In this document: piece by piece, positions 8,289-51,814 of the stretch
Layout of the letters: each line of letters starts with the position of its first letter
Position numbering within the stretch: position 1 is the stretch's first letter
NCBI GenBank assembly: GCA_020891255.1
Contig: BQFW01000006.1
Span: forward strand, 744,001 to 808,000
Reading direction: 5' to 3'
Source of the DNA: Entomortierella parvispora E1425
Lineage: Eukaryota; Fungi; Mortierellomycota
DNA: 64,000 nt
The notes under the pieces: generated by a model
Seen by the model: only the letters and a program-made list of their open reading frames with translations
The model's database searches: none
What the model was told of the DNA's origin: nothing
Translations under genes and position numbers: made by a program

Positions 8289-11200
8289 ATGGAGAGCGGA
8301 GAAGAGTCGTCGATCGTTGATCTGGACCCTTTGAACTCAGTCAGCCAGACAGGTTCATTATTGAACTCTGGGGATACGCAAATGGAGTTCCTTGAAGAGG
8401 TATTGCCAATACTTGACTTAAAGTCAGTCCAGGTCATGAAATGGCAAAGCTGATTTCGCAATGCTGATTGTGCATTTCGCTGCTCCATTAGATTGCACTC
8501 TCATTCGTTACGGACGCGCTTTTTTTGGAGAAAGCCAACGCGCTCCTTTTGAACGAACAGCAGCAGAGTGAAACTCTCCAGATTCGAGCGGAGAGTATTG
8601 TTCGGGATGGCGGGGCCAGCTTTCCATTAAACGACAACGTCGACAAAACCCTCTACATCCTCCAACGGCAGTTTGGCCTCGTTGTTGACGAAACCAGCGA
8701 CACTCTCTCCGCGTACATCGCCGCACTGATGAACAAAACCGTTCATGCAACCTTCCAGCTGATTGCACCCGAGTCTAATATCGACATTCCACCATCAAAC
8801 CTGCTTTTACGCGTCATTGCCCAACAGCTTGGTTTGACCATCATAGTGCTGTCAACGAGGTCAATGGCATTACAATATGGAAACGATTTCTCTTCGACCA
8901 TCGTTCTGCTGGAGGCTGTGGATGCCTTCAAAAGCGTGCGAACCTACACCCCTCTATCATGCGCGTCGTGTACACCTGTCTATACTGCCACACCCTCTCC
9001 TACCGCGGAATTATCTTTGAATCCTATCGCCAAGTTCCGGGATCATAAAAGGGCTCGACATACCAAAGACAAGGGCATTGTCAATGTTGTGGTTGGAAAG
9101 AAATGCATCAGAGAAAGATGGTACGTTGAATTGATATTGAGACACTGCTCTGAGCCCCCAGCACATCTTACTAATCCGCCAATTGTAACAACCTTAGCGA
9201 GATCGTACTCCGAGGACTTGTGAAGGCCGCCGCACAGACAGCCTTCGACACGGCCATGAAAGGCAAGATTGCGTGCCCGCCCGACCTGTCTTTGTTGATG
9301 GAGCAGAAGTTTCCAGCCTTAGAGAAGAGGGAACTGGGGCGCAATCGGGTTCCGCCACACATTGTTCAGGAAGCTGTGCGGGATATGGAGCTTAAGACTG
9401 GCCAGCCCGTGGGATCTGTTACGACTCAAGCCTTTAAAGCCAGACTCTGCGAAGAGAACTCTGACTTTTCATCGATAAAAGTATATTTGGAAACTGCCGA
9501 AGAGAAACTTCGACAGATTTGGGACGGTTATGTGCTGGAACACCAACACAATGGCACTCAGGCATCCGTTCTGGCCCCAGCAAGCACCTCATCGTCCCCC
9601 TCATCAGGCAGCATTCAGAACTCTGAACCATCAAAGGAGGGAGCCGACGAGGAGCAAGAGCTGCGTATGTGCGATGCATCACTTGGAAAGATCCTCCGGC
9701 CAGGAATATACAAAGAAGCTGAGAGGATACTTACGGACAAGCAGACAAGAGTCTCCAACTATATCGACGAAGTGCAAGTTGCACTCCGGAAAGCGGCAAT
9801 AGTGGTAAGAGACTGGCGGCCTGCTCTATTATCTCGTCATGTTACTTATTGGTTTATTTCTTTGCTTGACCAAACTATAGACATGTCAGGGACTTTTGCA
9901 CACGCAGTCGGAAAACGTCGATTTGAAGTCGTTCCTTCCGAAAGATTTTAAAATAAGGGATCTTTCTCTCGAGAAGAACCCGGTCGTATCGATAGGAATT
10001 GTCTCCAGCACTTTTATGACAAAGTTTGTGAAGACAAAAGACCACGACAGCGATATCGACTCCGACCTCCTCAACCTCTTTGATCAGGCAACCATCCAAC
10101 ATCTTTCTTCGAGACTTATTTCAACAGCCTCGGCTTCCGAGCCCCCGCCCAAAAAGCAAAAGCTGGACAGTGGGGATATTGCTCCTGCTGATGATGAAGA
10201 TGACGAGGAGGAAGATAACCAGGAAGATGATGGAGACGACAATACTGAGGTCAAGGATGTCGGTGGTGCAAAGACCAGTAAGGGAAGGGTCCATCCAGCT
10301 TGGGACACATTGGCGTCTATTGTACAGCAAACCACAACCACCACCATCGACTACACTAAAGCGCCGCAAGGGATGGGCCAGGTGAAAAACGAGATGATCC
10401 GGACCATGGCGACAAATATGAAAAACATTTGGAGCGGGGACATTTATGGTCACGTCAAGAAGGCAGTCGTTCGATACCTTGTCAGGATCCATCTTCGCCC
10501 TTTGAGTGAGAAGTGGTTTAGAGAGTATAAGCAAAAAATGGCCGAAGAAAAGAGAAAGGAAGCCAGGCGACGAAAGTCGATACCAAGATCCAGACACAAA
10601 CAGGCGAGAAGGAGGCATCGCAGCCTGCTGAATCAGCTTGACCACACAATCCACAAGTGTGAACTGCACTGGTCAGGATCGACACTCTACGTGCGGGATC
10701 AGGAGTCTGAAGCTACCGATGTGGAAGTCGAACATCCTTCGCTTTCCGACGGCATGGTCTCTTTGACCCCAAGCTCCCGTGTCTCTAGAGTCCAGAAGCT
10801 GCTCTATTTGATTGGGAACGGACCACTTCCTTTCAACGCCGAATCAGCTGCTGCTCCCACCGAGGGAGGCCACGATCTCTTGGACGCAGAGGAGATCGAC
10901 GACCAGGACGATGAGGTTGGCTTTGAGTTAGATGGGATTGACTGCCAGGAGGAAGATGAGGATGGCTTCGACGAAGTTGTTGCTGAGTTGGAGGTCAGTG
11001 AGACAGTAAACGAACAACAGGCCAAGCAAGGTACAGTGATGGTGTGTGGCCACTGTATTTGTACTCGGTGAGTAGAGTATTAACACGTTCATTCATCTCA
11101 TGATAGCGCGAAAAGCTGAACCTACATCGAAGCACGTGAAGGGGTTGGAAGTAGTCATCTGCAAACTGCTGGACTTGTCAGAAGCGGATCTTCCGACCGT

Positions 11201-13763
11201 GATCACGGACGATGACTTCCGCGCTTACTTGTTCACGGGCCACAAGTTCCTGCACGACGAGATCAAAGTCGCGGCAGGAATCGTTAACCTGCTTCGCCCA
11301 TTTGCCCCGAGGAAAGATCAATCTGGCCATATTCCACGGCACATACTGGCAACGGGACCATTCGTCTACTTGGCAAATCTACTTTTACGAGCAATGGGAT
11401 TTCAAGATTTCACCAGAGAGATTTCTCCCATCTCGTCTGCGGGTAGCATCCATGCCATTCCGTTAGGATCGATAGGATTGACACAAGTCCTATGTTGTCC
11501 TGACAAGGGACACTTTGACGTCCACAGCCAGCGAGGAGAGTTACTTTCCAAACCAGAGCTAGCAGTCGATCATTCCTCTCTGATCTTTGCCGCGTTCTTC
11601 AAAATGGAGACAGTAAACTCCATTTGCAAAGCACATGGACTCGAGTTTGCGAACAGGTAAGCGATGCAGAGCTGGTGAAGAGAGGCATGGTACTTTCAGA
11701 GCATTTTTTTTTCTAACGCACCTCATTTTCTATCGAACTTTAAAACGATCGTAGGATGATGTTTGTTGACCACCAGACTGTACGGATCCTGGGGCGTAAA
11801 ACAAAACTAGGCGCACCTTCGGACTTGACGAAAAAGAAAAAAGGCAAAAAGGCTACAAGGAAGAACTGGCAACCATCGGATGCAGACCTCCGACAGTTGA
11901 AATTGGAAGAGTCCAAGTTGGACAAGTCTACGGCCAAGGAGCGAGCGGCAGAGTTGGGAGAAGCGATTAAGGACAGCGAAATAGATATGAAGGGTCTAAA
12001 TCGCCAAGCAGCAAAACTGGAGCTGTCGGTTAAAAAATACAAATCAGAACTCCAGCAGCTCAAAGGAGACGATCACATGGCCGACGAAAGCGCAGAGGTC
12101 GAGGACTGCTTGAACAAGGATCGGCAAGAGCTCTACGACATACGACGTCAAATTATTCCGCAGAAAGTTGCCCTCAAAAATTTGCGGCAGAAGAAGTATG
12201 ACTACGACCGATACAGCAAATCCTCCTTGTCAGCACCGTCAAAAAAGAAGGACAGGGAGCAACCTGACGCTCCAACTATGACCACCCCAACATTGAGCCG
12301 ACCGGGCTGTATGAACAAGACCGAGTCCGTTGATATCAGCACACTTCTACGCGATATTGACGCCAACAATGCAGATCCAACGGCACGCAAAGTGCAACTT
12401 GTACCGGGGGGAACGGACCCAGGGTCCCACATACTTTTTAACACCGTCCCAGTCCCAATGGCTTCGCTCATCAAGCTTCAGAACAGATTTGAGGTCTTGG
12501 CGGATGGAAAGGACCCGGACGATGGACTGCCGTCACTTGAGAGTATGAAGTTCCCTGATGCGCACCAGACAACCACTCAGCAGCTACGCCACCATGCTGG
12601 ATTGAATAAGAGGGCAGAGAAACGACGTCGCTTGATTTCATCCAACAGAGCCGTGTCGGACGCCCATTCTCTGCTGGCCGAGAACTCCATTAAAAAAGCC
12701 CATTGCATCCAGGACGTTGAGCAAGCCCAGACAATCCGGAGAGGGACTCGCACGACTCTTCAAGGCTTTGAACAGTCAAAAAAAATGAGGAACAGCCGCC
12801 GAAGAGGAGAACTCGAGCTGAAACGCACATATGACAGGGCAGCTGCTGAAGAGAGGAAAGCGTTCGGGAAGCAACCTTGCGGTAAGTCATGCAACTTGCA
12901 ACTTCAGTCTTTAGTCTTGATTTTTTTTTTTTTTGTGAGATACAACAATAGACGACATCGTACTAATTGCAAACTTTTCTGAAAATAGGTGAAGATGCGT
13001 TCACGAAAAAGCTAGAGAAGAACGGACAGTGCACCTCTTGCAATACACACCACCGACCCGAGCTTCTCCCAGATCCATAAGACCCCTCCAAACGTCGCCT
13101 AATCCTGAAGCACGTTACCGATTGTCCGAAGACCAAGCCCAGAGTAATACCCTTATTCTTACACGGCGCCGCTGGTTCTGGCGTAGGCTCTCGTCTGAAG
13201 GGTCGCGCTAAAATGGGTGGTAGTAAAATCCCTCAGAGGCACATGTGCTCCTCTCCGGTTTGCAAGACCAACGAACATCTTTCTTCACAGACGTGCCCGC
13301 TATGCTTTCAGCTGCTTCGACTTGCAAGAGGGAGACGGTGGCGAAGAGGCATCCACAAGCTGGTCCGGCTACATGGGGCAGTCGAATGTTTTAATCCAGA
13401 TTGTGCTGCATTCAGGCGCGGATACACACAGAGAGGAAGAGACACGAATGCATCGATGAACATTGCTTTGGCAGGATTTTCGCTCCTGCTCTCACCAGAA
13501 CGCCGCCCAATCGCGCCGTTCGACCCACAGGCCCCCGCTTTGGCGTGCCCAACAACCACAGACACCAGTGCGTTACCAGCTGGATACCAAAAACTTTCCC
13601 CTCGCATCGAAGCAGATGCCGAAGCGGACGCGGATATCTGTCCGAGTTATGTAAGTACTCTAAGATCAAATTGCTTTCTGGCCCTATTATAATTGTTAGC
13701 CCGAGTTCAAATCGACCCACTTACTTTGTTTACGCTTCCGTTTTATGCTAACAGACACTGTAA
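8289..13763 (+). CDS. Giant multi-exon Fanzor (eukaryotic TnpB-like RNA-guided nuclease), ~1614 codons, interrupted by one in-frame TAA (possible pseudogene)
   Basis: Predicted exons 8289-8399, 8492-9120, 9198-9804, 9881-11030, 11107-11656, 11755-12881, 12989-13650, 13755-13763 join in phase through GT-AG introns. RuvC-I GGTDPG (D 12416-12418), GxGVGSRLKG motif, RuvC-II TNEHLSSQTCPLC (E 13273-13275), Zn finger C..C, RuvC-III RDTNASMNI (D 13441-13443). TAA at 13078-13080. Confidence 0.82.
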
Positions 13764-41756: not shown

Positions 41757-43583
41757 CTAGACCTGGATCTGAGCATCCTGTCTGAACTTGGCCATGCGGG
41801 CCTCAAGCTCGGGACGGAAGTGGCGGATCAAACCCTGAACAGGCCAGGCGGCGGCATCTCCCAAAGCGCAAATGGTGTGACCCTCGATCTCACGAGACAA
41901 CTCCTCGATCATGTCAATCTCGCGAGGACGGGCCTGGCCGTTCTCGAAACGAGCCATCATGTTGGCGAGCCAAGAAGTTCCCTCACGGCAAGGTGTGCAC
42001 TGTCCACAGGACTCGTGCTTGTAGAAGGCAGAAAGACGGGAAATGGCAGAGACGATATCAGTGGACTTATCCATGACAATGACAGCGGCTGTTCCCAAAC
42101 CGGACTGGACATCACGAAGAGCATCGAAATCCATGAGAACATCGTCGCAAATGTTACGGGGCAAGACTGGGACCGAGGAACCTCCGGGAATGATTCCCAA
42201 GAGGTTATCCCAGCCTCCCTTGACACCACCGCAGTGCTTCTCGATGAGCTCCTTCAATGGGATAGACATCTCTTCCTCGACTGTGCAGGGGTTGTTGACG
42301 TGTCCAGAGATGCAGAACAACTTGGTACCGGCGTTACGGGGGCGACCGAATCCGGCGAACCACTTGCCTCCGCGTCTCAAGATAGTGGGGGCAACGGCGA
42401 CAGTTTCGACGTTAGCTACGGTGGTGGGGCATCCGAAGAGACCGACATCGGCGGGGAATGGGGGCTTCAGGCGAGGCTTTCCAGCCTTGCCCTCGATCGA
42501 CTCGATCAAGGCGGTTTCCTCACCGCAGATATAAGCACCAGCACCACGGTGAATGTACACATCGAAATCGTATCCGGAACCGCAAGCGTTCTTTCCGATC
42601 AAACCGGCCTTGTAGGCTTCATCAATAGCGACCTGGAGGTTGGAAGCCTCGTTGTAGAACTCTCCACGGATATAAATGTAGGCTAAGGGTAAAAAAACAG
42701 AGTGAACTCGTGTAAGGATTACCGCTATAGATTGCGCAACCGACTCTACTACAAACAAATAAACAGGAAAACGTACCGGCATTGGCGTTCATGGCACGAC
42801 CAGCGACCAAGCATCCCTCGACCAACTTGTGGGGATCACCACGCATAATCTCACGATCCTTGCAAGTACCGGGTTCGCCCTCATCGGCGTTAACGACCAA
42901 GTAACGGGGACTATTGAATAAAAAAGTCGTAGTGGTGAGTACTCAAGTATAAGAGTTTAGGCAGACATCCTTAATGCTAGGCACTTGACAGCGCGTCAGG
43001 CTTTCCGAGTTTTTGTTGTTTTTAATCCAAGTTACATCCAAATGCTCGCTCCTTGATGTCCACCGGCAGTATTCAACTCGAATTATGTAGATCCATAGTG
43101 TCCAAGAATGTAATTCCGAGAACGTGCAAAAATCCTGTTTCCCGTAGCTTTGATCTAAAACGAATATGAGCAGTTCCAAGCAGCCATCGCTTACCGGCCA
43201 TCCGAGGGCTTGTTCATGAAACTCCACTTCAATCCGGAGGGGAAACCAGCACCACCGCGTCCACGGAGACCGGACTCCTTCATCTCGTTCAAGATCCAGT
43301 CATGACCCTTGAGAATAATCTCCTTGGTCTTGTGCCAGTCACCACGCTTGAGAGCTCCCTTGAGCTTGTAGTCGTGGAATCCATAAATGTTGGTAAAGAT
43401 GCGGTCCTCGTCCTTCAAGTTTCCGAAGGAGGTGCGGACTGGTGGAACCGCAGCCTCGGAGGCGAATGAGCGGACAGCAGTCTTGACGATGATGTTGCGA
43501 GTCTGACGCGTGCTGGCCAGGAAGGCTGTAGTCGACAAACAAGTCAATGGAGAGCGTGTCAAAGGAACCAAAAGACGGGACAT
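41757..43583 (-). CDS. NDUFV1: NADH:ubiquinone oxidoreductase 51-kDa flavoprotein subunit (multi-exon)
   Basis: Mitochondrial presequence; [20 protein letters not shown]; [15 protein letters not shown]; [16 protein letters not shown]; [12 protein letters not shown]; [13 protein letters not shown]. Confidence 0.97.
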
Positions 43584-44039: not shown

Positions 44040-44135
44040 CGAGAGGCGAACCCCCGAAAGGAAGTGGCACAATTGAATCTATTTGACACGTCACCGAAGA
44101 TGACGCATCGCACAGACCCCGCCACTTCCCAAACT
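44040..44135 (-). ncRNA. Putative Fanzor omegaRNA (scaffold ~44135-44060 plus flank-derived guide from 44059 downward)
   Basis: Lies downstream of the Fanzor stop (44186) and ends at the TIR. GGAAGUGGC (44129-44121) pairs with terminal GCCACUUCC (44068-44060) and encloses the hairpin CGUCAUCUUCGGUGACG (44105-44089). Boundaries are inferred. Confidence 0.72.
44051..44059. repeat. 9-bp target-site duplication CCCCCGAAA, left copy
   Basis: Identical 9-mer at 51806-51814 directly abuts the other TIR. Confidence 0.92.
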
Positions 44136-44185
44136 CAGCCCGATGTATTTGCTGATACACAAAATGGACTGACTAAAATAAGTAT

Positions 44186-47100
44186 CTACTCCTCTGCTTC
44201 TCGCTTGACTTGATCGGGGTCATTCTCCATTTGTCGTTTGACTTGATCCTGTCCTCCCTCTGACCAATTGAGTGGCGCCTTTCGTTTGACTCCGCGAGCC
44301 GTGGATTTGACACTTAGTGTGGCTTCGGGGGAAGAAGGTACCCTCTGTGCGCTGAGCACCGTAGCACGTCTGCCCCCACGACCATCCTCCCACGGATATT
44401 TCCCTTCTGCATCCACAGGTTGAAGGTAACGAGGCCGTTGCTGTTTGGTAATGTGCCCCTGAACAACATTCGCTATGTTGTGCCCACCCATCACATCTCT
44501 GTGAAAGTAGGTCTTACAGTAGGAACAGTACAGCCGTCGAATGTTCACTTGGCCGACGAAGTTTTCACAGCCCGGACACTTTTTGGAGGTGTAATACTCG
44601 TTAACACCAACCACTATGTATCCAAGCGACCGTGCCTAGAAAGCAATTGATGTTAAACTTGATATAATGATATGAAAAATAAAAAAAAATAAAAAAGGAC
44701 CAGAGCACTATACCTTTTGGACAAAGTATGACTGAAAGGTCCCATGGAGGGAGGACAATCTCATTGTCGAGGAGAAGTCACCAAGACCAATACCAATGAC
44801 AACCTTGTTTTCGGGATCTCTTTTTGATCCCAATGACCCTCCAACAAGACTCAAAAGTTGGTTTGCGATAAGCCTATATTCTTCCACCTTGGCTTTCTGG
44901 GCGTTCCATCTGTGTTTTTTCAGAACGACATTGTCATAAAACTGTTCGAGCGGGGCACCCTTTTCTTTCAAATGCTGGACGTAATCCTTGATAGATGCCT
45001 CTGGACCACGAACAGGTGGTAGACTCGATTCCAAGTCGGCAACCGACAGTGTTCCTCCCAAAGTTTTTTTTTTCCTATGCTCTAGCCAGCTTCTGTGTCT
45101 AAAGACAGGTTGGTATACGGCCTTTTGCTTTACGGACAGGTTGAAAAAACGCTGCTTCGCAGGAATGGCAGTTGCTCCACCTTGTGAAGGTAAGATAGCA
45201 CTAGCCCCAACAACGAAGGCCTGTCCTAAGTCGATTCCCAATATTTTGATCTTCTCAGGATCGACGCCATCGCCCCAGAGTCGGTGGACATCTTCCTTGG
45301 ATTTGACGACATTCCTGATCTCCGTCAGATAGTAATCCAACCCACCCAAAGTAGAGGCAATGCGGTCAGGTAGCTTCTCTGGAGCAAGACGGCGGTACTT
45401 CACACAATTCAGCTCGTTGAGTTTGAACCCAAGTACTTGAAGACGGAATCCATCTGTCCTAATCGACCCTCGTAGGAGATATCCGTTGGCGGCATAGGTC
45501 TTGGGATCGAAGGTCGCTTGAGATATGTTGCTCAGATGAGTCATAACTTCTGGAAGTGACATGGTCCTTGCTGACCTTGAGAAGCTCCTCTTCTTTTTTC
45601 TCTCTTCCGCGCTGTATCCCCCGATGTCGGACAAGAGGCTGTTGATGAGTAGGCCAGGCTTGGAATATCCTAGCCACATCGCAACAACATCTTGGGTGAT
45701 TTTCTCGAATCGATGGACGTTAACCGTATGGAAGGCGAATTTCTGCAACTGTTCTTTCAAGGCCTGGTCCTGCCAGAAGAGCTTTATCAAGTCAAGCTCT
45801 GAGATGTTAACAAACGTGCTGTCCATAGGTGATATCGGGGTAACACATCGTTTGGACCCTGTGATTCGGTTTAGGATGATGAAGTTCTCCACTGGAGATA
45901 GCTTCAAATCGATATTGTCCACCGTGTTCGGAGGCAGTATACCCTTCTTCTTAAGAGCACGAATCTGAATAGGAGCACGCGAGGAGGTCATTAATACTTG
46001 AGAGAAAGAAATATTAACCCGAAATCGGCAGCAGGCGCAGACTATTATTGTTACCTTTTTGCAAAGATCAAGAGAGCCATGTTTGTAGTGCTTCATATAC
46101 TCAATAGTAAGATTCAGCGCAGTTGATTGAAGAACAGAAGAAGAAGGATATGGCCCTGCCGCTATCGATATGAGGACGAGGAGACCAAACGATAACATGT
46201 TAGATAGAGAATAGAGATGCTCAGGCACATGCAGACAAACCATTTAGTCATAGTAAGCACTTGATGACATCAAATTTACCATTGCCATTCTGCGGAGGCA
46301 AGAAGTCCTTTGCTTTGATCAGGAATTCGCGAACCGCACACACTGAATCCGAGTCCCCCTTTTCTTTCTTCACCTTTGCCTTGTCAGCGTTCGATGCGGT
46401 GTTTTTTTGCTCAACCGAGGGTGTTTGGTCGCTGGAAGACGTTTGGTCGGTGTAAGACAATTGATCGGTGGAAGACGATTGATCGGTCGAATGAGGCTTG
46501 TATTTGGCCTTAAATGCAGCCAATCTTGCTGTCTGTGACATTTTCGGAGGTTCCGAGTTGTAAATGCTCGACAGAAGTGACAAGAAAAAACTGGAGAGAC
46601 TTGTTCTTCTTAAACATCTCGTCATCTGCCTCGACGCTGGTCGTATTGAGCTCATTGCGTTCTCCTGGATCCTCGTTGTCTTCCAAAGCAGATCCCTCAG
46701 CAGGAAGCTTGTCTCCGGCAACGAAGGGCTTGCACAACATGCCAAGGATAAGCTTGTCATTCTTGTCAAGATTATCCATAGACAGGGTCTCCAAGTATTG
46801 CCCTATTGCTAGCTGGCATGCCCTCTTCGTCGCTGTCGCCAATCGTGCAACATTTGACAAGCAGGTCTTAATTCGAGGCAAATGTGACGCAGGAAGCAAC
46901 GTCCTTTGTAGAGCTCGAGTGACATTCGCGTTTAGAGTGCCTACATCCATGACTCGAAGGGGATGTTGCCGCTGGAGCTCCTTGACAAGCCGCATCTTAT
47001 CCATTGTCCGGAAATTAGGCGGATCTTTTGTCACACTCTCGCTTGATTTCGTTGTGGTGGGAAGCACAGGTCGAGGGGGAGGTTCTGTCCACGGCTTTAA

Positions 47101-48527
47101 AGTGTACTGCTTCAGAACATCTGGGGGGTCGTGCTCAATGATGCGGGACCTCGTTTTGATGGCGTACCGCTGGCGATATTTGTATTTCCTGCCAGACGCG
47201 TGAGGAGATGGCGAAATTGCAGGTTGACTGTCGACAGTGTTGTACCGATTAAACTTATACTCAATATCGCCAGTATGGGCGACGGGCAGGTTGGAAGAGG
47301 ACCTAGAAGACGATAATGATACCTTGTTAGTGACTGGAGAACACAGTCTTGCTTTCAAGTGCTGAAGTGCTGAGTGAAATGAAGAAAGTCCATACCCTTC
47401 ACTCCTAACAGTCTTGAGTTGGCTCTGCAAACTTCTCAGCCTCGCAGTTATTTCTGTCAGAGACGGGGAAGAACGCGGCTGATTCATCGTATCCTCATAA
47501 CAGGCTTGGGGCAGCAGAGTTTGATCCCAAAAGGTAAATTCTTGTCGGGCAAATACCTTCAGGGCCGAGTCGAAATATGAATTGCCAGGATCCTTAATGA
47601 TCACCTCCGGATGGGTCAAATAGGCACGAATCAATTCGTTGACATCTAATGGGGGGTCTTCACAAAATAGGGCTGTTAGTTGGTACTAAAGCATCCATCA
47701 TGGCAATGCATTGGTGGGAGGGACCAAAAGTACATAGAACAGATGTTACCTTTGTCACGCAATGATTGGAGGACCTCATAGTTGGTGACTATGCCCATTT
47801 GCTTCAAATTGCAGGAGTAGTCGTTCCGACAAACAACACCAAGAGCTGTGAGACCCGCCCTGGTTAGCTGCAAATGTATTAACAGCTTCGGGACGTCGTA
47901 CTCAAGGTATCCTCCCCTGGCAAGTGGCCTCCAAATTGTAGTGATCGAAGAAAGATGGACGAGACTATCACTGTCACCAGAGACAACAATATCCTCAGTG
48001 CGGCAATTGAGTGCAATCTGGATGTCAGCCTCTGATGGACATTGAATGACACTCCAGCCCTTTGCTATTAAGAATTGAGCAAGCGACTCGCGAAGGTCGG
48101 CAGAGAGATAAAATGCTGCGTTAAGCCCTTTGTTGAGTTTCCTGAATTGCTGTTTCTTGAGCTTCTTTTTCTGCCGAAACATATCCTCCATCTCATGCAA
48201 CAGCGAGTCCGCTTTCGTCAGGGATGTTGAGCAACGAGCCTCACGCAAGGCTCTTGTTGCGCGTTTCTCCTCTGGGGATGGTCCGTCCATATAGAGAAGA
48301 GTCGTTGCTGGAGGAAATTTAAGAGACCGGAGCTTCATCTCGAAGATGGAATTGGCCATCACTGGGTCGTGTTTGAGGAATGTGCGGCGAATGAGAGGGT
48401 ACATTGAGCCCAAAATATCGACATGAAAGGTTGTATTCGGGGGCCGAGAATGCTGGGGGCAGTTGGAAAGAACGTCGGGGAAGTATCCCTTCTTCTTGAC
48501 GAACGGCCATAAGAAAGGGACGCCCAT
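44186..48527 (-). CDS. XPG/FEN1-family (PIN-like) nuclease - Fanzor RuvC fusion protein, ~1330 aa, 5 exons, one +1 homopolymer frameshift
   Basis: Exon 1 48527-47750: MGVPFLW, FHVDILG, YMDGPSPEEK, SEADIQIA, SGDSDSL, GVVCRNDY. Phase-1 intron 47749-47673 joins it in frame to the next exon. RuvC-I ILGIDLG (D 45230-45232); last exon from 44635 ARSLGYIVVGVNEYYTSKKCPGC...YCSYC...HRDVMGGHN. A6 run at 46585-46590 has one extra base. Confidence 0.88.
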
Positions 48528-48881
48528 AGCAAAAGGCCCGGCGGAAGATAAAGGGCAACCAGGGATTGAGCGAGGAAGTAAAGGTGTATAAAAAATATGT
48601 GGGTGGTTGGGAGGGTGGGTGGAAGAGGGGAGGTCAGAAGGAGCGACAGAGCAGAAGGAAGTTGGGAAGAAAGGCGTGTCTTTTAAGAATCCTGGTGAAG
48701 GAAGGATGGGAGTGGGAATTTTTTGCCACCACTTTTGTTCCCAGTTCAAATTCAAGCCACTTGGTTGCACAAAATAGTTTGTGTTCCTGTTTTCATTTTT
48801 TTCCCGCCTTCCCGCCGCCGCGCTTCCCGCCACCGCGCTTCCCGCGTTTGTCCTCTTGCCTCCTGCTCCATTGCATGCCCC
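48528..48881. promoter_or_regulatory. Divergent (bidirectional) promoter region between XPG-Fanzor and MULE transposase
   Basis: 354 bp between head-to-head ATGs (48527 minus, 48882 plus); TTCCCGC x4 GC repeats at 48801-48845. Confidence 0.6.
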
Positions 48882-51634
48882 ATGGCCAGCCTTCGAGTGA
48901 AGGACATCCTCCTGCAGCCCGAGGACTTTGATCCCCGCGAGATATACACGCCCAACAACATTTCTCAGGAGCACGAGATCTGGAGGGCATCACTCTCCAT
49001 CGAGGAATTCAAAACGTTTTGGCATCGAGAGCGGACAGCAATTCAATTTGAACATCGTGTTGAAGGAGGATGCAATCACCATCTCTTGAAAGGTGACCCA
49101 AACGCCTTACTTCCAACCTACCGCCCTGCACCTCCCTTTGGTAGCGCTCCAGGGGGACAAAAGAGGTTCGATTGGAGTTTCCGCTTCACATGCAGAAGGT
49201 ACAGGCAGATCAATGATAATTTGACCATCAAACGCACATCCGTTGGACAGAGATGTCCTGTTTCTATCCGGATGAAAAAGCCTGTAGGGAGAGAGCTTGT
49301 GGTTGTAGAGTATCAATGGAGACACAATCATGACGACTCCGCGGAAGCACGAGCCAGAATTCCATTGAGCAGAAACGAATTGATGTGGACCAAGTCCCAG
49401 GCAAAGAACAACCAGAGGTGGACTTCAATTAAAGATCTTCTCCGTCCAGTTAACCAGGCAGCGATGTCCTTGGTAAGCAAGGTCCCAGACTTTGAACGTT
49501 AATCAGTGAAGAGGTATTTCCAACTGATGTACTCATATTTCCGTTGCTGTGATTTAGCTCGCGAGCACGACACCAGGAAGCCCGTTGAGCCCTGCTGCAT
49601 ACATGAAATACAAGCATGTAAAATCTGCCATCTACCGCTCAAAGACGTCTTTGTCCCGTAAAAGTATTAACCCCACCCTGAGTATCAAACTTTGGATGAA
49701 TGATATTCAAGCACATGGTGGCAAGAGTACGTTCGTCCCGAAAGTATCAGGGATCGACAATAATTACTTCTTTGCCTGGTCTACCAAATTTCAGCTGGAG
49801 GTAGGCATTGCTTTTTGATGTCTGTGTTTCCCATACCATACTCCCACTTACAAACACTATCCATGTTACTTCGTTGACCAGATTATGGCTAGGAACACGG
49901 GGATCGTGTGCATGGACTCTACTCACAAGACAGTTAAATCACTGTTACCTGATCCTAAGGATAAAAAAAGCGTGCCCTTCCGCGTACCTTTTCACCCTCC
50001 TTGTCCGAGATCGTCAGGCAAACTGTGGAGTGCCCGTGGCTTTTATGGTCTGCAATTCAGAATCCATGTAAGTTTCAGAGTATACCACAACTGATCCATT
50101 GCATTCTGAGGATGCAACAATGAACTAAATGGCCTTTTTTTTTTTTTTTAGAAATACTCTGAGACTCTGGCTAAAATGGGTTTCCGATCACTGTGGTATC
50201 AATGCAACCAAATTCATGGTGGATTGCTCCCAGGCGGAGTCAGAAGCGATATATCAGGCCTTCATGACCTCGGTAGATATTTACTATTGTACATTCCATG
50301 TTGCTCAAGCGTGGGAGAGGAAATCCAAGGAACTGTACGGAGTAAGTGTGTGAGAAAAGTGCGTTGCCGCCCGGGTAACAGATTTTGTGATGAAGCAATT
50401 AATTCTCATGTTGCAACAGGTCAAAGTCTGTAATGATTTACGTGGGCCACTGAAACGGATCCGAACCGCCGAAACTGAGGAGGAGCTTGCTAGAAGATGG
50501 GACAGCTTCACAGAAACATACAAAAAATACGACAAGATGATCAGTTACTTGAGAGCATGGATGACACCTGAGAAAAAAGTGAAGTGGGTGCTGTACATAA
50601 GAAAAGTAAAGTAGGCCATGGTTTGCAGAAGGACTGAAAGTCGAGTCAAGTTTGTATGACCTTTACTCTCTAACCATTTCAGCACTTCTTTCAAATTAAA
50701 CTAGGACTATCAACATACAAATACTAACAACCTTGTGGAGTCCTGGCACAAGACATTGAAGAGACGGCATTTGCAAAAGAGACGTAATTTACGTGCCGAT
50801 GACTTGGTGTTTATATTGCAAGGAAAAGTGGATATCGATTTTCAGGACACTTTGTTCAAAATCTCCCGAAATCTTGTTGAGAGACCACTGTCGACGTATG
50901 ACAAAGAAAGAAAGAGTAAAGCGATGGGTCTGGAGCATACCACTGCGATTCAGATGGTTAGATTACAGCTCCCTGCCATCAAGGTACCTCCACTTGCTGT
51001 TGCAAGTTTTTCTTTTGCTCCGCTCATCACGGTCACTTGCTTAACAGCTTCATATTATCACCCTACACTTCCTTAGTTTGATGTTCAATCCTTTCGATCT
51101 GCAGCTACATGGTATTCAATCCGTGTAGATAGAGACTTCAATCTCATCCTTGCATGCACATGCTCTGATTACCGCCAACATCTGTTGCCATGTAAGCACA
51201 TGTACCTTGTGGAAAGATTTCACGAAAGCATGAAGATATCATACACAGGAGAGCCAGCTGACGACCCCGAGGATGTGCTTGTTGATGAGCTTGCTATTGG
51301 GGAATCCCTGGAGCAAGCCAACCAAGACCTAGACATCTTTGGTCCCGATCTGGAAGCAGGGATTGGTCCCTTGCTCCGGCTTCAACTTGACCAACAGCGG
51401 GCCAAGGAGCAAGAAGCTCGTAGGGCTGCCAGAGAACAGGCCGTCCTTGCTGAATTTGAACACAATAAGGCGGAACTGAAAGATATGGCGAATCAAATTG
51501 TTGCGACTGTGGAGGCGAGAAAGGGGCGAAAATGTACCTTGGAGTATCTCAAAAGTACTGTGGCGGCTTTAAGAAACACTGTGTTGGAGATCAAGGGTCT
51601 TAACTCAGGGAACACCGGGCGGACTTGTCAGTAG
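48882..51634 (+). CDS. MULE (Mutator-family) DDE transposase with SWIM zinc finger, multi-exon, one +1 homopolymer frameshift
   Basis: N-terminal FAR1/WRKY-like C..C..HNH segment; catalytic VCMDSTHKT, KFMVDCS, YCTFHV (CxxH), TNNLVESWHKTLK; SWIM CTCSDYRQHLLPCKH. A7 at 49963-49969 has one extra A relative to the frame encoding YLFTLLVRD...GVPVAF. Confidence 0.92.
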
Positions 51635-51805
51635 TGGATGGATCAAATAAAGGGACTTAAAGTCAACGGCGCGTCGATTGACCAGTTGTCGATTGACCAT
51701 TGTCCATTGTCCATTGTTCGATTGACGATGGCGGGCCTTGTCGGACTTCGAAGGGGTCAAGCAAGAAGTCACGTTCCGAGCCATAGAAGCAATTGTGCCA
51801 TTTCC

Positions 51806-51814
51806 CCCCCGAAA
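51806..51814. repeat. 9-bp target-site duplication CCCCCGAAA, right copy
   Basis: Directly follows the right TIR ...gtgccatttcc. Confidence 0.92.

Follow-up and report, generated by a model that had tools for sequence, protein, structure and literature searches.

A predicted fusion of a FEN1/EXO1-like 5' nuclease with a Fanzor in a Mutator-like transposon of Entomortierella parvispora

Introduction

Can an RNA-guided nuclease and a 5' nuclease be parts of one protein in a fungal transposon? The question is raised by a stretch of 64,000 nucleotides from Entomortierella parvispora E1425 (GenBank assembly GCA_020891255.1, contig BQFW01000006.1, positions 744,001 to 808,000 of the forward strand), here called the window; coordinates are window positions unless another locus is named. 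Five consecutive open frames lie on its minus strand. The first starts with MGVPFLWPFVKKKGY (MGVPFLW) and contains the motifs VDILG, YMDGPSPEEK, SEAD, SGDSD and GVVCRNDY, and GIDLG, followed by VNEYYTSKKCPGC, CSYC and HRD, is found in the last two. A first-pass annotation of the locus had read these frames as a natural fusion of an XPG/FEN1-type nuclease with a Fanzor. To our knowledge, Fanzors are the only RNA-guided DNA nucleases native to eukaryotes.

Here we report a computational analysis of this locus and of its relatives. The frames very probably encode one polypeptide of about 1325 residues, which unites a 5' nuclease and a Fanzor and belongs to an active Mutator-like transposon.

Results

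Gene structure and comparative evidence

The five frames fit a single minus-strand gene of five exons and about 1325 codons (48527-44186); once four introns and one T are taken out, an open frame of 1325 codons results (Table 1). The motifs quoted by the first-pass annotation were all found at their minus-strand positions. Its short GT-AG intron, our intron 1, links exon 1 in phase with the frame that follows and is borne out by the sequence. Its statement that the C-terminal body ends in a TnpB/Fanzor RuvC agrees with the four motifs of the last two frames and with a Pfam match to the TNB domain (37.6 bits). Beyond what that annotation spells out, we find three further introns and a one-base surplus in a T-run of exon 2. 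Intron 1 has a second possible acceptor at 47658 which leaves the phase unchanged.

With exon 1 as query we found 16 long predicted proteins that are collinear with the window over 48527-44300 (4.3 kb), and five of the eight long homologues scanned against Pfam carry Cas12f1-like_TNB at the C-terminus. A full-length search gave 24 relatives of up to 1327 residues from the genera Actinomortierella, Gryganskiella, Linnemannia, Podila, Dissophora, Mortierella, Entomortierella and Benniella. At the level of DNA, 5/5 fetched loci with downstream DNA show matches to both our nuclease-domain profile (A1) and our Fanzor-body profile (A2) on one strand, the latter 1.1-2.3 kb further downstream. This linkage includes Umbelopsis ramanniana, a relative outside Mortierellomycota. 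Homologues of 260-280 residues were considered as free-standing nucleases and rejected; they stem from exon-level gene calls or from metagenome contigs of short length, and wherever the DNA allows a look the Fanzor body lies downstream.

Three of the introns are bridged by a continuous open reading frame in a relative. A single Umbelopsis frame (locus L006, 8917-9942) corresponds to model residues 1-304 and spans intron 1, a Benniella frame (L005, 10167-11228) corresponds to residues 400-635 and 706-763 and spans intron 2, and a frame of locus L003 (9522-10997) corresponds to residues 734-1175 and spans intron 3. When three homologues are aligned by tblastn, intron 3 also shows up as a gap. 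In L001-L005 as in the window, intron 1 interrupts the profile at one and the same position. Moreover, the nuclease fold itself extends over intron 1: the profile matches to FEN-1 and Rad2 reach profile position ~288, and the structural alignment with EXO1 spans residues 2-309 of the homologue P0047, in which the equivalent of exon 1 ends near residue 262. Intron 4 is kept in every locus examined and divides the RuvC motifs; therefore splicing is needed for a working enzyme.

We further compared the window with Logan contigs of four runs, among them X1, a source-like run, and X3, a strain diverged by about 8-10%. Relative to the window, X3 has indels of +3 and +1 in intron 1 and of +1 at 44643 in intron 4, and its intron 2 is replaced. 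Indels not divisible by three within introns 1 and 4 are as for non-coding sequence.

The only frameshift of the window is the surplus T in the T-run. The surplus base at 46585 is missing from the short-read contigs of both X1 and X3, the X1 contig being a collapse of about four copies in which a minority variant would be hidden. With one T removed the frame reads FFLSLLSSIYNSEPP and is much closer to the family consensus FL..L..LYSGN.P than without the correction. The surplus T may have arisen in the assembly or may be a true defect of this single copy.

Across the family both active sites are, as judged from the aligned proteins, maintained throughout Mortierellomycota in relatives of only 30-47% identity, and ten or more genera of Mortierellaceae have full-length fusions that keep both. 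In 21 proteins examined, the nine nuclease residues and the eight RuvC/zinc-finger residues are kept wherever the gene model covers them, apart from few substitutions (two at active-site positions of P0090, one each in P0166, P0138, P0012 and P0165). Seven proteins of different genera have all active-site residues, with 27-47% identity to the window over the nuclease and Fanzor-body domains. The family is large: there are 504 representatives for the nuclease domain alone and dozens of full-length proteins, which public records label 'hypothetical', 'Rad2 nuclease', 'putative transposase', 'XPG-I domain-containing' or 'Cas12f1-like TNB domain-containing'. The pairwise identities of the N- and C-terminal domains correlate (Mantel r 0.66, p ~0.002). 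This is as expected if the fusion arose once, long ago, and was passed on as a whole; relatedness alone also contributes to such a correlation.

The N-terminal 5' nuclease

Residues 1 to ~310 are predicted from sequence and model to form a FEN1/EXO1-type fold in which the two-metal site is complete and which also has the gateway Lys/Arg pair, a helix-three-turn-helix (H3TH) motif and a long helical arch. Exon 1 (259 codons) as phmmer query against the PDB matched yeast Rad2, archaeal FEN-1 and human XPG (best E 1.3e-4). The family profile matched the PDB over the full length of the domain, namely Rad2 (4e-15), FEN1 (1.6e-12), XPG (~2e-11), EXO1 (4e-10) and GEN1 (1.5e-5). With Pfam the window domain reaches 16.9-18.7 bits for XPG_I, below the cut-off of 24.9, and gives no XPG_N match. 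Searched one by one, 38/49 members match XPG_I (E<0.01) and 12/49 XPG_I_2, a few match Pox_G5 or XRN_N, and some relatives pass the XPG_I cut-off (P0075, 30.2 bits). Because the window score is under the threshold, the family assignment rests on profile and structure.

In an alignment of 49 members, M1, G2, D37, D81, G82, E87, K88, R95, E166, A167, D168, D185, S186, D187, N235, D236 and Y237 are invariant or at least 90% conserved. All seven acidic metal ligands of FEN1 are matched (D37, D81, E166, D168, D185, D187 and D236). R95 is invariant and K88 at least 90% conserved, and both have the same spacing from D81 as K93 and R100 have from D86 in FEN1.

We modelled exon 1 of the window with AlphaFold2 (AF2) at a mean predicted local distance difference test (pLDDT) of 94.4 and a predicted template-modelling score (pTM) of 0.89. 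A 33-residue helix (86-118) and a further helix (125-138) lie where FEN1 and EXO1 carry the arch. Foldseek searches of the PDB placed FEN1 and EXO1 first, with template-modelling (TM) scores by query of 0.72-0.73 (overall range 0.72-0.77), and XPG/Rad2 at 0.57-0.62; among the Swiss-Prot models the top 30/30 matches are FEN1. Likewise, VIA-align with the homologue P0047 gave human EXO1 a Z of 23.1 (root-mean-square deviation 2.7 A), FEN1 ~22, XPG 17-21 and GEN1 16.8. We therefore rejected XPG proper as the nearest relative, since FEN1 and EXO1 fit better structurally. From sequence and models we conclude that the N-terminal domain is a divergent, catalytically complete member of the FEN1/XPG superfamily, and the modelled shape suggests greatest likeness to the enzymes which thread a free 5' end.

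The C-terminal Fanzor

The C-terminal piece scores above the cut-off of 26.3 bits for Pfam Cas12f1-like_TNB, the zinc ribbon of TnpB and Fanzor proteins. Its RuvC triad consists of D1004 (GIDLG), the relocated E1189 (VNEYYTS) and D1223 (HRD), and G1152 stands in the place of the canonical Glu. A C4 zinc finger is formed by C1196, C1199, C1213 and C1216 (YTSKKCPGC..CSYC..HRD), in agreement with the [TS][TS]xxC..RD motif defined by Bao and Jurka (PMC3627910). With the 511-residue Fanzor body as phmmer query we obtained no match in the PDB, and a family profile was needed. The Fanzor-body profile matched the mimivirus Fanzor2 (9b0l, E 2.9e-5) as well as TranC, CasPhi and TnpB chains. In the profile alignment to ApmFz2, E1189 falls on E467 and D1223 on D501. 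In ApmFz2 the catalytic residues are D324, E467 and D501; E467 is displaced by ~50 residues from its canonical place, as is the case only in Fanzors and in the TnpBs from which they descend (PMC11832414). Within the family the C-terminal halves can be aligned well. SpuFz1, the Fanzor1 of Spizellomyces punctatus, was not matched directly at the sequence level, neither by phmmer nor by the family profile against the PDB.

At the structural level the match to SpuFz1 was obtained with the homologue P0047, not with the window protein. The AF2 model of full-length P0047 (pLDDT 79, pTM 0.60) matches both FEN1/EXO1 and the Spizellomyces Fanzor1, the latter in chains 9cey, 8gkh and 9ceu with E 1.5e-7 to 8.6e-7, prob 1.0 and TM by target 0.49-0.52 (Foldseek). 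These alignments are ~790 columns long, and therefore much of the conserved middle region of the fusion protein probably belongs to the WED/REC part of the Fanzor. For this middle region Pfam gave no match and the ESM Atlas low-scoring, disorder-like matches only. The ESM Atlas also holds a 58-member cluster of ~1312-residue proteins of the fusion family, whose next neighbours are TNB proteins of giant viruses. Taken together, sequence, model and genomic context of the C-terminal part fit Fanzor1.

Two repeats were noted in exon 2. An S/T/D/Q-rich repeat of STDQ units lies in the linker (46380-46500), and the X3 contig breaks at this point, with loose letters resembling the repeat, so that the repeat number may well differ between strains. 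Further upstream in the gene, at 47350-47380, there is an 8-nt tandem duplication (GCACTTCA). The window version is in frame with the homologues; the collapsed contig of X3 is without one unit, which would shift the frame unless compensated.

The transposon

The fusion gene lies within a 7.7-kb Mutator-like element (MULE) at 44060-51805 (44051-51814 with the target-site duplications, TSDs). Its 23-nt terminal inverted repeats (TIRs) are 87% complementary, their 16-nt cores occur in the window at the two element ends only, and the 9-bp TSD CCCCCGAAA is present on both flanks. The fusion gene is arranged head-to-head with a transposase gene, with which it shares the intergenic region; the same arrangement is seen in Dissophora (L001) and Benniella (L005). 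Pfam found no MULE domain in the short transposase exon pieces of the window; the homologous exon of Benniella matches SWIM with 26.4 bits (cut-off 19.6). In L002, L004 and L006 the fusion is present without a nearby transposase. A search for TIRs in L001 and L002 gave no convincing ends. In Mortierella alpina (L004, 3754-8252) a host gene of Sla2/Hip1R type (ANTH, I/LWEQ), not a transposase, is located upstream of the fusion.

The element contig of X1 starts exactly at 44060 and is covered to a depth of 317, whereas the flank has 81.5; over 4.6 kb, 3 letters and 1 gap set this contig apart from the window. From the ~4-fold depth and the near-identity there are therefore about four nearly identical copies, and the family has recently been active. 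Loose ends at 44059/44060 are other insertion flanks. The X3 flank contig ends at 44042, which may mark an empty site.

The stop codon at 44186 lies 126 nt from the TIR tip at 44060. Including the tip, this 3' end has a stable fold with a long hairpin (z-score -3.86). Among the differences listed between X3 and the window, 3 substitutions and 1 indel fall into 44060-44223 and 16 substitutions into 44224-44333, the adjacent 110 bases of coding sequence, so that the 3' end is by far the better conserved of the two. Fanzor1 omega-RNAs come from the 3' end of the locus and reach ~15 nt beyond the element. Such a pattern would fit an omega-RNA scaffold or transposase-binding end sequences, and a candidate guide would run into the TSD and the flank.

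Next to the element an intron-containing, NDUFV1-like gene (NADH dehydrogenase 51-kDa subunit) is located on the minus strand at 41757-43583. The MULE end at 44060 is ~480 bp upstream of its start codon, and the insertion is therefore promoter-proximal. A second very long Fanzor-like gene in the window (8289-13763) matches neither family profile; it is of a different lineage and unrelated.

Table 1 Features of the fusion gene and of its transposon (window positions; residue numbers refer to the fusion protein)
Feature	Position	Strand	Description
Exon 1	48527-47750	-	codons 1-259; main part of the FEN1/EXO1-like 5' nuclease
Intron 1	47749-47673	-	77 nt, GT..AG, ACTAAC close upstream of the acceptor
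Exon 2	47672-46280	-	end of the nuclease fold, disordered linker, conserved middle region, S/T/D/Q-rich low-complexity stretch
Motifs of the conserved middle region (exon 2)		-	RQRY..KPW, KRACQLAIGQYLE, FFLSLLSSIYNSEPP
T6 homopolymer	46585-46590	-	exon 2; one surplus T, the only frameshift of the window
Intron 2	46279-46162	-	118 nt, GTAAAT..TAG, phase 1
Exon 3	46161-46055	-	start of the conserved Fanzor body, YPSSSVLQ..HYKHGS..CKK
Intron 3	46054-45965	-	90 nt, GTAACA..CAG, phase 0
Exon 4	45964-44714	-	WED/REC-like part of the Fanzor and RuvC-I (GIDLG, D1004); G1152 at the canonical RuvC-II position
Intron 4	44713-44636	-	78 nt, GTATAG..TAG, phase 0
Exon 5	44635-44189	-	E1189, C4 zinc finger, RuvC-III (HRD, D1223), basic C-terminal tail; stop codon 44188-44186
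3' untranslated end to transposon tip	44060-44185	-	candidate omega-RNA scaffold; hairpin of the TIR tip with 44120-44128
TIR, Fanzor-proximal end	44060-44082	+	TSD CCCCCGAAA before it, 44051-44059
TIR, transposase-proximal end	51783-51805	-	TSD CCCCCGAAA after it, 51806-51814
Transposase gene, multi-exon	48879-51634 (approximate)	+	divergent; SWIM-type CxH motif PCKHMY at ~51185
Residues D37, D81, K88			human FEN1 D34, D86, K93 (profile-to-FEN1 alignment, chain 5zod)
Residues R95, E166, D168			human FEN1 R100, E158, E160 (profile-to-FEN1 alignment, chain 5zod)
Residues D185, D187, D236			human FEN1 D179, D181, D233 (profile-to-FEN1 alignment, chain 5zod)

Discussion

The natural fusion claimed by the first-pass annotation agrees with the collinear homologues, with the bridged introns and with the same-strand linkage in 5/5 loci. 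The XPG/FEN1-type domain with its acidic ligands in place was also recognized correctly, as nine residues align to FEN1 and AF2 and Foldseek agree. Three of the checks proposed with it concern sequence and structure. For intact fusions in related genomes, full-length fusions are seen across genera, and structure prediction of exon 1 leads to FEN1 and EXO1 as top matches. The third, a search with hidden Markov models, gave a mixed answer: TNB is above the cut-off and the family profile matches FEN1 and Rad2, but XPG_I remains sub-threshold for the window. In the overall interpretation the architecture holds by comparative and structural evidence; the domain is structurally closer to FEN1/EXO1 than to XPG proper.

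We suggest that the fusion protein could act in the following steps. Transcription of the 3' end of the gene and on across the transposon tip would yield an omega-RNA. This RNA would then guide the RuvC site to element-free DNA, either an empty allele or the footprint left by excision. On the same break the tethered 5' nuclease would act next and either strip the 5' overhang or flap of a staggered cut of the TnpB/Cas12 type or start 5'-to-3' resection. Simple re-ligation and end joining would thereby be blocked and 3' single strands exposed. Finally, homologous recombination from the MULE-bearing copy could restore or spread the element.

We prefer this cut-then-process reading because of three observations. 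There is a restorative-homing model for OMEGA nucleases, and the reliance of eukaryotes on end joining is held to make homing less adaptive (PMC13565253). Engineered fusions of IscB with T5 exonuclease increase editing, and the 5' end at the break is degraded (PMC12660989). The arch-bearing fold, which in the models is of FEN1/EXO1 and not of XPG or GEN1 type, suggests that a free 5' end is threaded, and it is thus suited to such ends. As a whole, a fusion protein in an active MULE with a cut-then-process role is in our view the best explanation, and we give it a probability of roughly 0.55. The particular course of events outlined above is more tentative, and we would put slightly less than even odds on it.

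Several points weigh against this explanation. If the surplus T is real, the copy in the window is broken. The splicing is deduced from comparative data, since run searches with the gene and with the neighbouring NDUFV1 gene gave no RNA-labelled run; the NDUFV1 search returned DNA or unlabelled runs only. In the Umbelopsis locus L006 (8917-12599) the nuclease and Fanzor parts are annotated as two adjacent genes with 44 nt between them. A stop (9943-9945) separates the parts; the next frame is open across it and a one-base shift would join them, so that this locus may be a copy with a frameshift or may truly consist of two genes. The first-pass annotation had named domains that are always separate genes as evidence against a fusion; 5/5 loci are linked, but one of them is this Umbelopsis locus. 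All members of the family are known from sequences and models only. The full-length AF2 model, with its pTM of 0.60, leaves the relative placement of the two active sites unestablished, and the computed evidence is the same for end resection and for other uses of a 5' nuclease. Finally, an Rfam search with the 3' end gave no match.

Four other explanations have to be weighed. The N-terminal domain could be a second-strand or R-loop cutter, which cuts the displaced non-target strand, a 5' flap at the R-loop junction or the R-loop RNA; the other strand would be left to RuvC, with a gap or a clean double-strand break as the outcome. The co-conservation of the two active sites would suit this role, Rad2/XPG-family enzymes act at junctions of single strand and duplex, and a lone RuvC site must otherwise cut two strands in turn, as described in a Cas12a R-loop paper. 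Cleavage of R-loop RNA by Rad27/FEN1 is likewise reported (PMC10201435). However, the characterised Fanzors and TnpBs cut both strands by RuvC alone, the fold is nearest to the arch-bearing FEN1/EXO1 enzymes, which need a free 5' end, and not to the bubble-cutting XPG, and the linker between the domains is long and partly disordered. We consider this explanation unlikely.

Alternatively, the 5' nuclease might serve the cut-and-paste transposition of the MULE, for example by flap removal during gap repair at excision sites or target-site duplications, and be fused to the Fanzor for co-expression only. Eukaryotic DNA transposons are known to carry accessory nucleases and helicases (Bao and Jurka 2013, PMC3627910), and the head-to-head arrangement with the transposase in three loci is in line with such a role. 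Against it, the nuclease is always joined to the Fanzor and never to the transposase, the fusion occurs in three other loci with no transposase nearby, and the N- and C-terminal domains co-evolve. A helper of transposition thus seems improbable to us.

It is also conceivable that the domain is a PIN-like 5' nuclease for RNA, which either releases the mature omega-RNA from the mRNA 3' end or degrades RNA, and does not act on DNA. RNases do exist in the superfamily, a few members give weak Pfam matches to XRN_N and Mut7-C, and a eukaryotic omega-RNA needs release from a Pol II transcript. Yet the nearest relatives in sequence and structure are all DNA 5' nucleases, the features with which FEN1 handles DNA are kept (the K93/R100 equivalents and H3TH), and enzymes of the TnpB type process their own guide RNA, which makes a role in RNA processing distinctly improbable.

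That there is no working fusion, the locus being either two neighbouring genes wrongly merged by predictors or a decaying pseudogene, could be argued from the T-run frameshift, from a stop (46250-46248) followed by an ATG (46243) inside predicted intron 2, from the two-gene annotation in Umbelopsis and from splicing known by comparison only, but it is very improbable given that the frameshift is missing in short-read contigs of two strains, that introns 1-3 are each bridged in some relative, that the nuclease fold crosses intron 1, that the ~4 copies are ~99.9% identical to one another and that seven proteins of different genera have all 18 catalytic and zinc residues.

Returning to the cut-then-process reading, an obstacle to restorative homing in eukaryotes is that breaks are often mended by end joining. 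An EXO1/FEN1-type nuclease kept on a Fanzor across a fungal group would be a concrete and testable answer, in that the element brings its own end processing. In its strongest form, the protein would be a natural single-chain, RNA-programmable cut-and-resect enzyme in which the Fanzor R-loop places an EXO1/FEN1-like nuclease on its own break to give a recombinogenic 3' tail. We regard this form as possible but would sooner bet against it. If it were true, a cut-and-paste MULE would act like a homing element or a gene drive in fungi, and as a tool the enzyme would offer a compact scaffold, shaped by evolution, with which to increase homology-directed repair. For genome engineers the fusion would represent a naturally optimised counterpart of the exonuclease fusions built so far, with linker and domain order selected in a eukaryotic nucleus.

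We found no paper joining Fanzor or TnpB with XPG, FEN1, Rad2 or Exo1 in the sense of a fusion, most subscription journals being outside the search. The main Fanzor/TnpB surveys and structure papers do not mention such a fusion, and FRI is the sole accessory Fanzor1 domain described there. The first-pass annotation knew of no characterisation of this architecture, and within this coverage the literature is in accord with it. The novelty lies in the combination of a 5' nuclease with a Fanzor; the absence of an earlier description is not proven.

Comparison with known systems

The closest known system is Fanzor1, for which SpuFz1 (PDB 8GKH, 9CEY) is the reference. Like the C-terminal part of the fusion, it is a transposon-borne eukaryotic relative of TnpB in which the RuvC Glu has moved next to the zinc finger and a CxxC..CxxC finger is followed by an RD motif, and the homologue model matches it in structure (prob 1.0, TM by target ~0.5). 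In contrast to SpuFz1, the fusion has about twice the length, an extra N-terminal nuclease of another fold and a conserved middle region. Fanzor1 proteins in MuDR-type elements with 9-bp TSDs have been recorded in Mucoromycota, and their N-terminal halves are highly variable (Bao and Jurka 2013, PMC3627910).

With FEN1 and EXO1 the N-terminal part shares the seven acidic ligands, the equivalents of K93 and R100, the helical arch, H3TH and the full-length fold. However, the identity is only 13-20%, and the window copy is under the Pfam XPG_I threshold. The fusion also has neither the PCNA-binding tail nor the C-terminal region of EXO1; instead its nuclease runs at the C-terminus into the Fanzor. 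Moreover, FEN1 and EXO1 are housekeeping repair genes, whereas the fusion is encoded by a transposon.

A lineage-restricted extra domain gained by a Fanzor1 in early-diverging fungi has a precedent in the FRI-Fanzor1 proteins of Parasitella and Rhizopus, whose FRI domain binds cyclophilin (Xu et al. 2024, PMC11423790). FRI is no nuclease, whereas the domain of the fusion is by sequence and model a catalytically complete 5' nuclease.

An RNA-guided nuclease and an end-processing nuclease are also combined in one chain in the engineered proteins enIscB-T5E, enDelIscB-T5E and TREX2-Cas9. T5 exonuclease belongs to the FEN/5'-3' exonuclease superfamily. These fusions are man-made, with IscB or Cas9 as partner and a C-terminal exonuclease, while the fungal fusion is natural and ancient, has its nuclease at the N-terminus and is kept by selection in a transposon.

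The proposed logic is that of the restorative homing by TnpB of IS200/IS605 and IS607 elements, in which a guide RNA from the element end directs a cut of element-free DNA and recombination restores the element (PMC13565253). Homing of this type has been shown for prokaryotic elements with TnpA only; here the carrier would be a eukaryotic element with TIRs and TSDs which brings its own end-processing nuclease, and the same logic is proposed for it.

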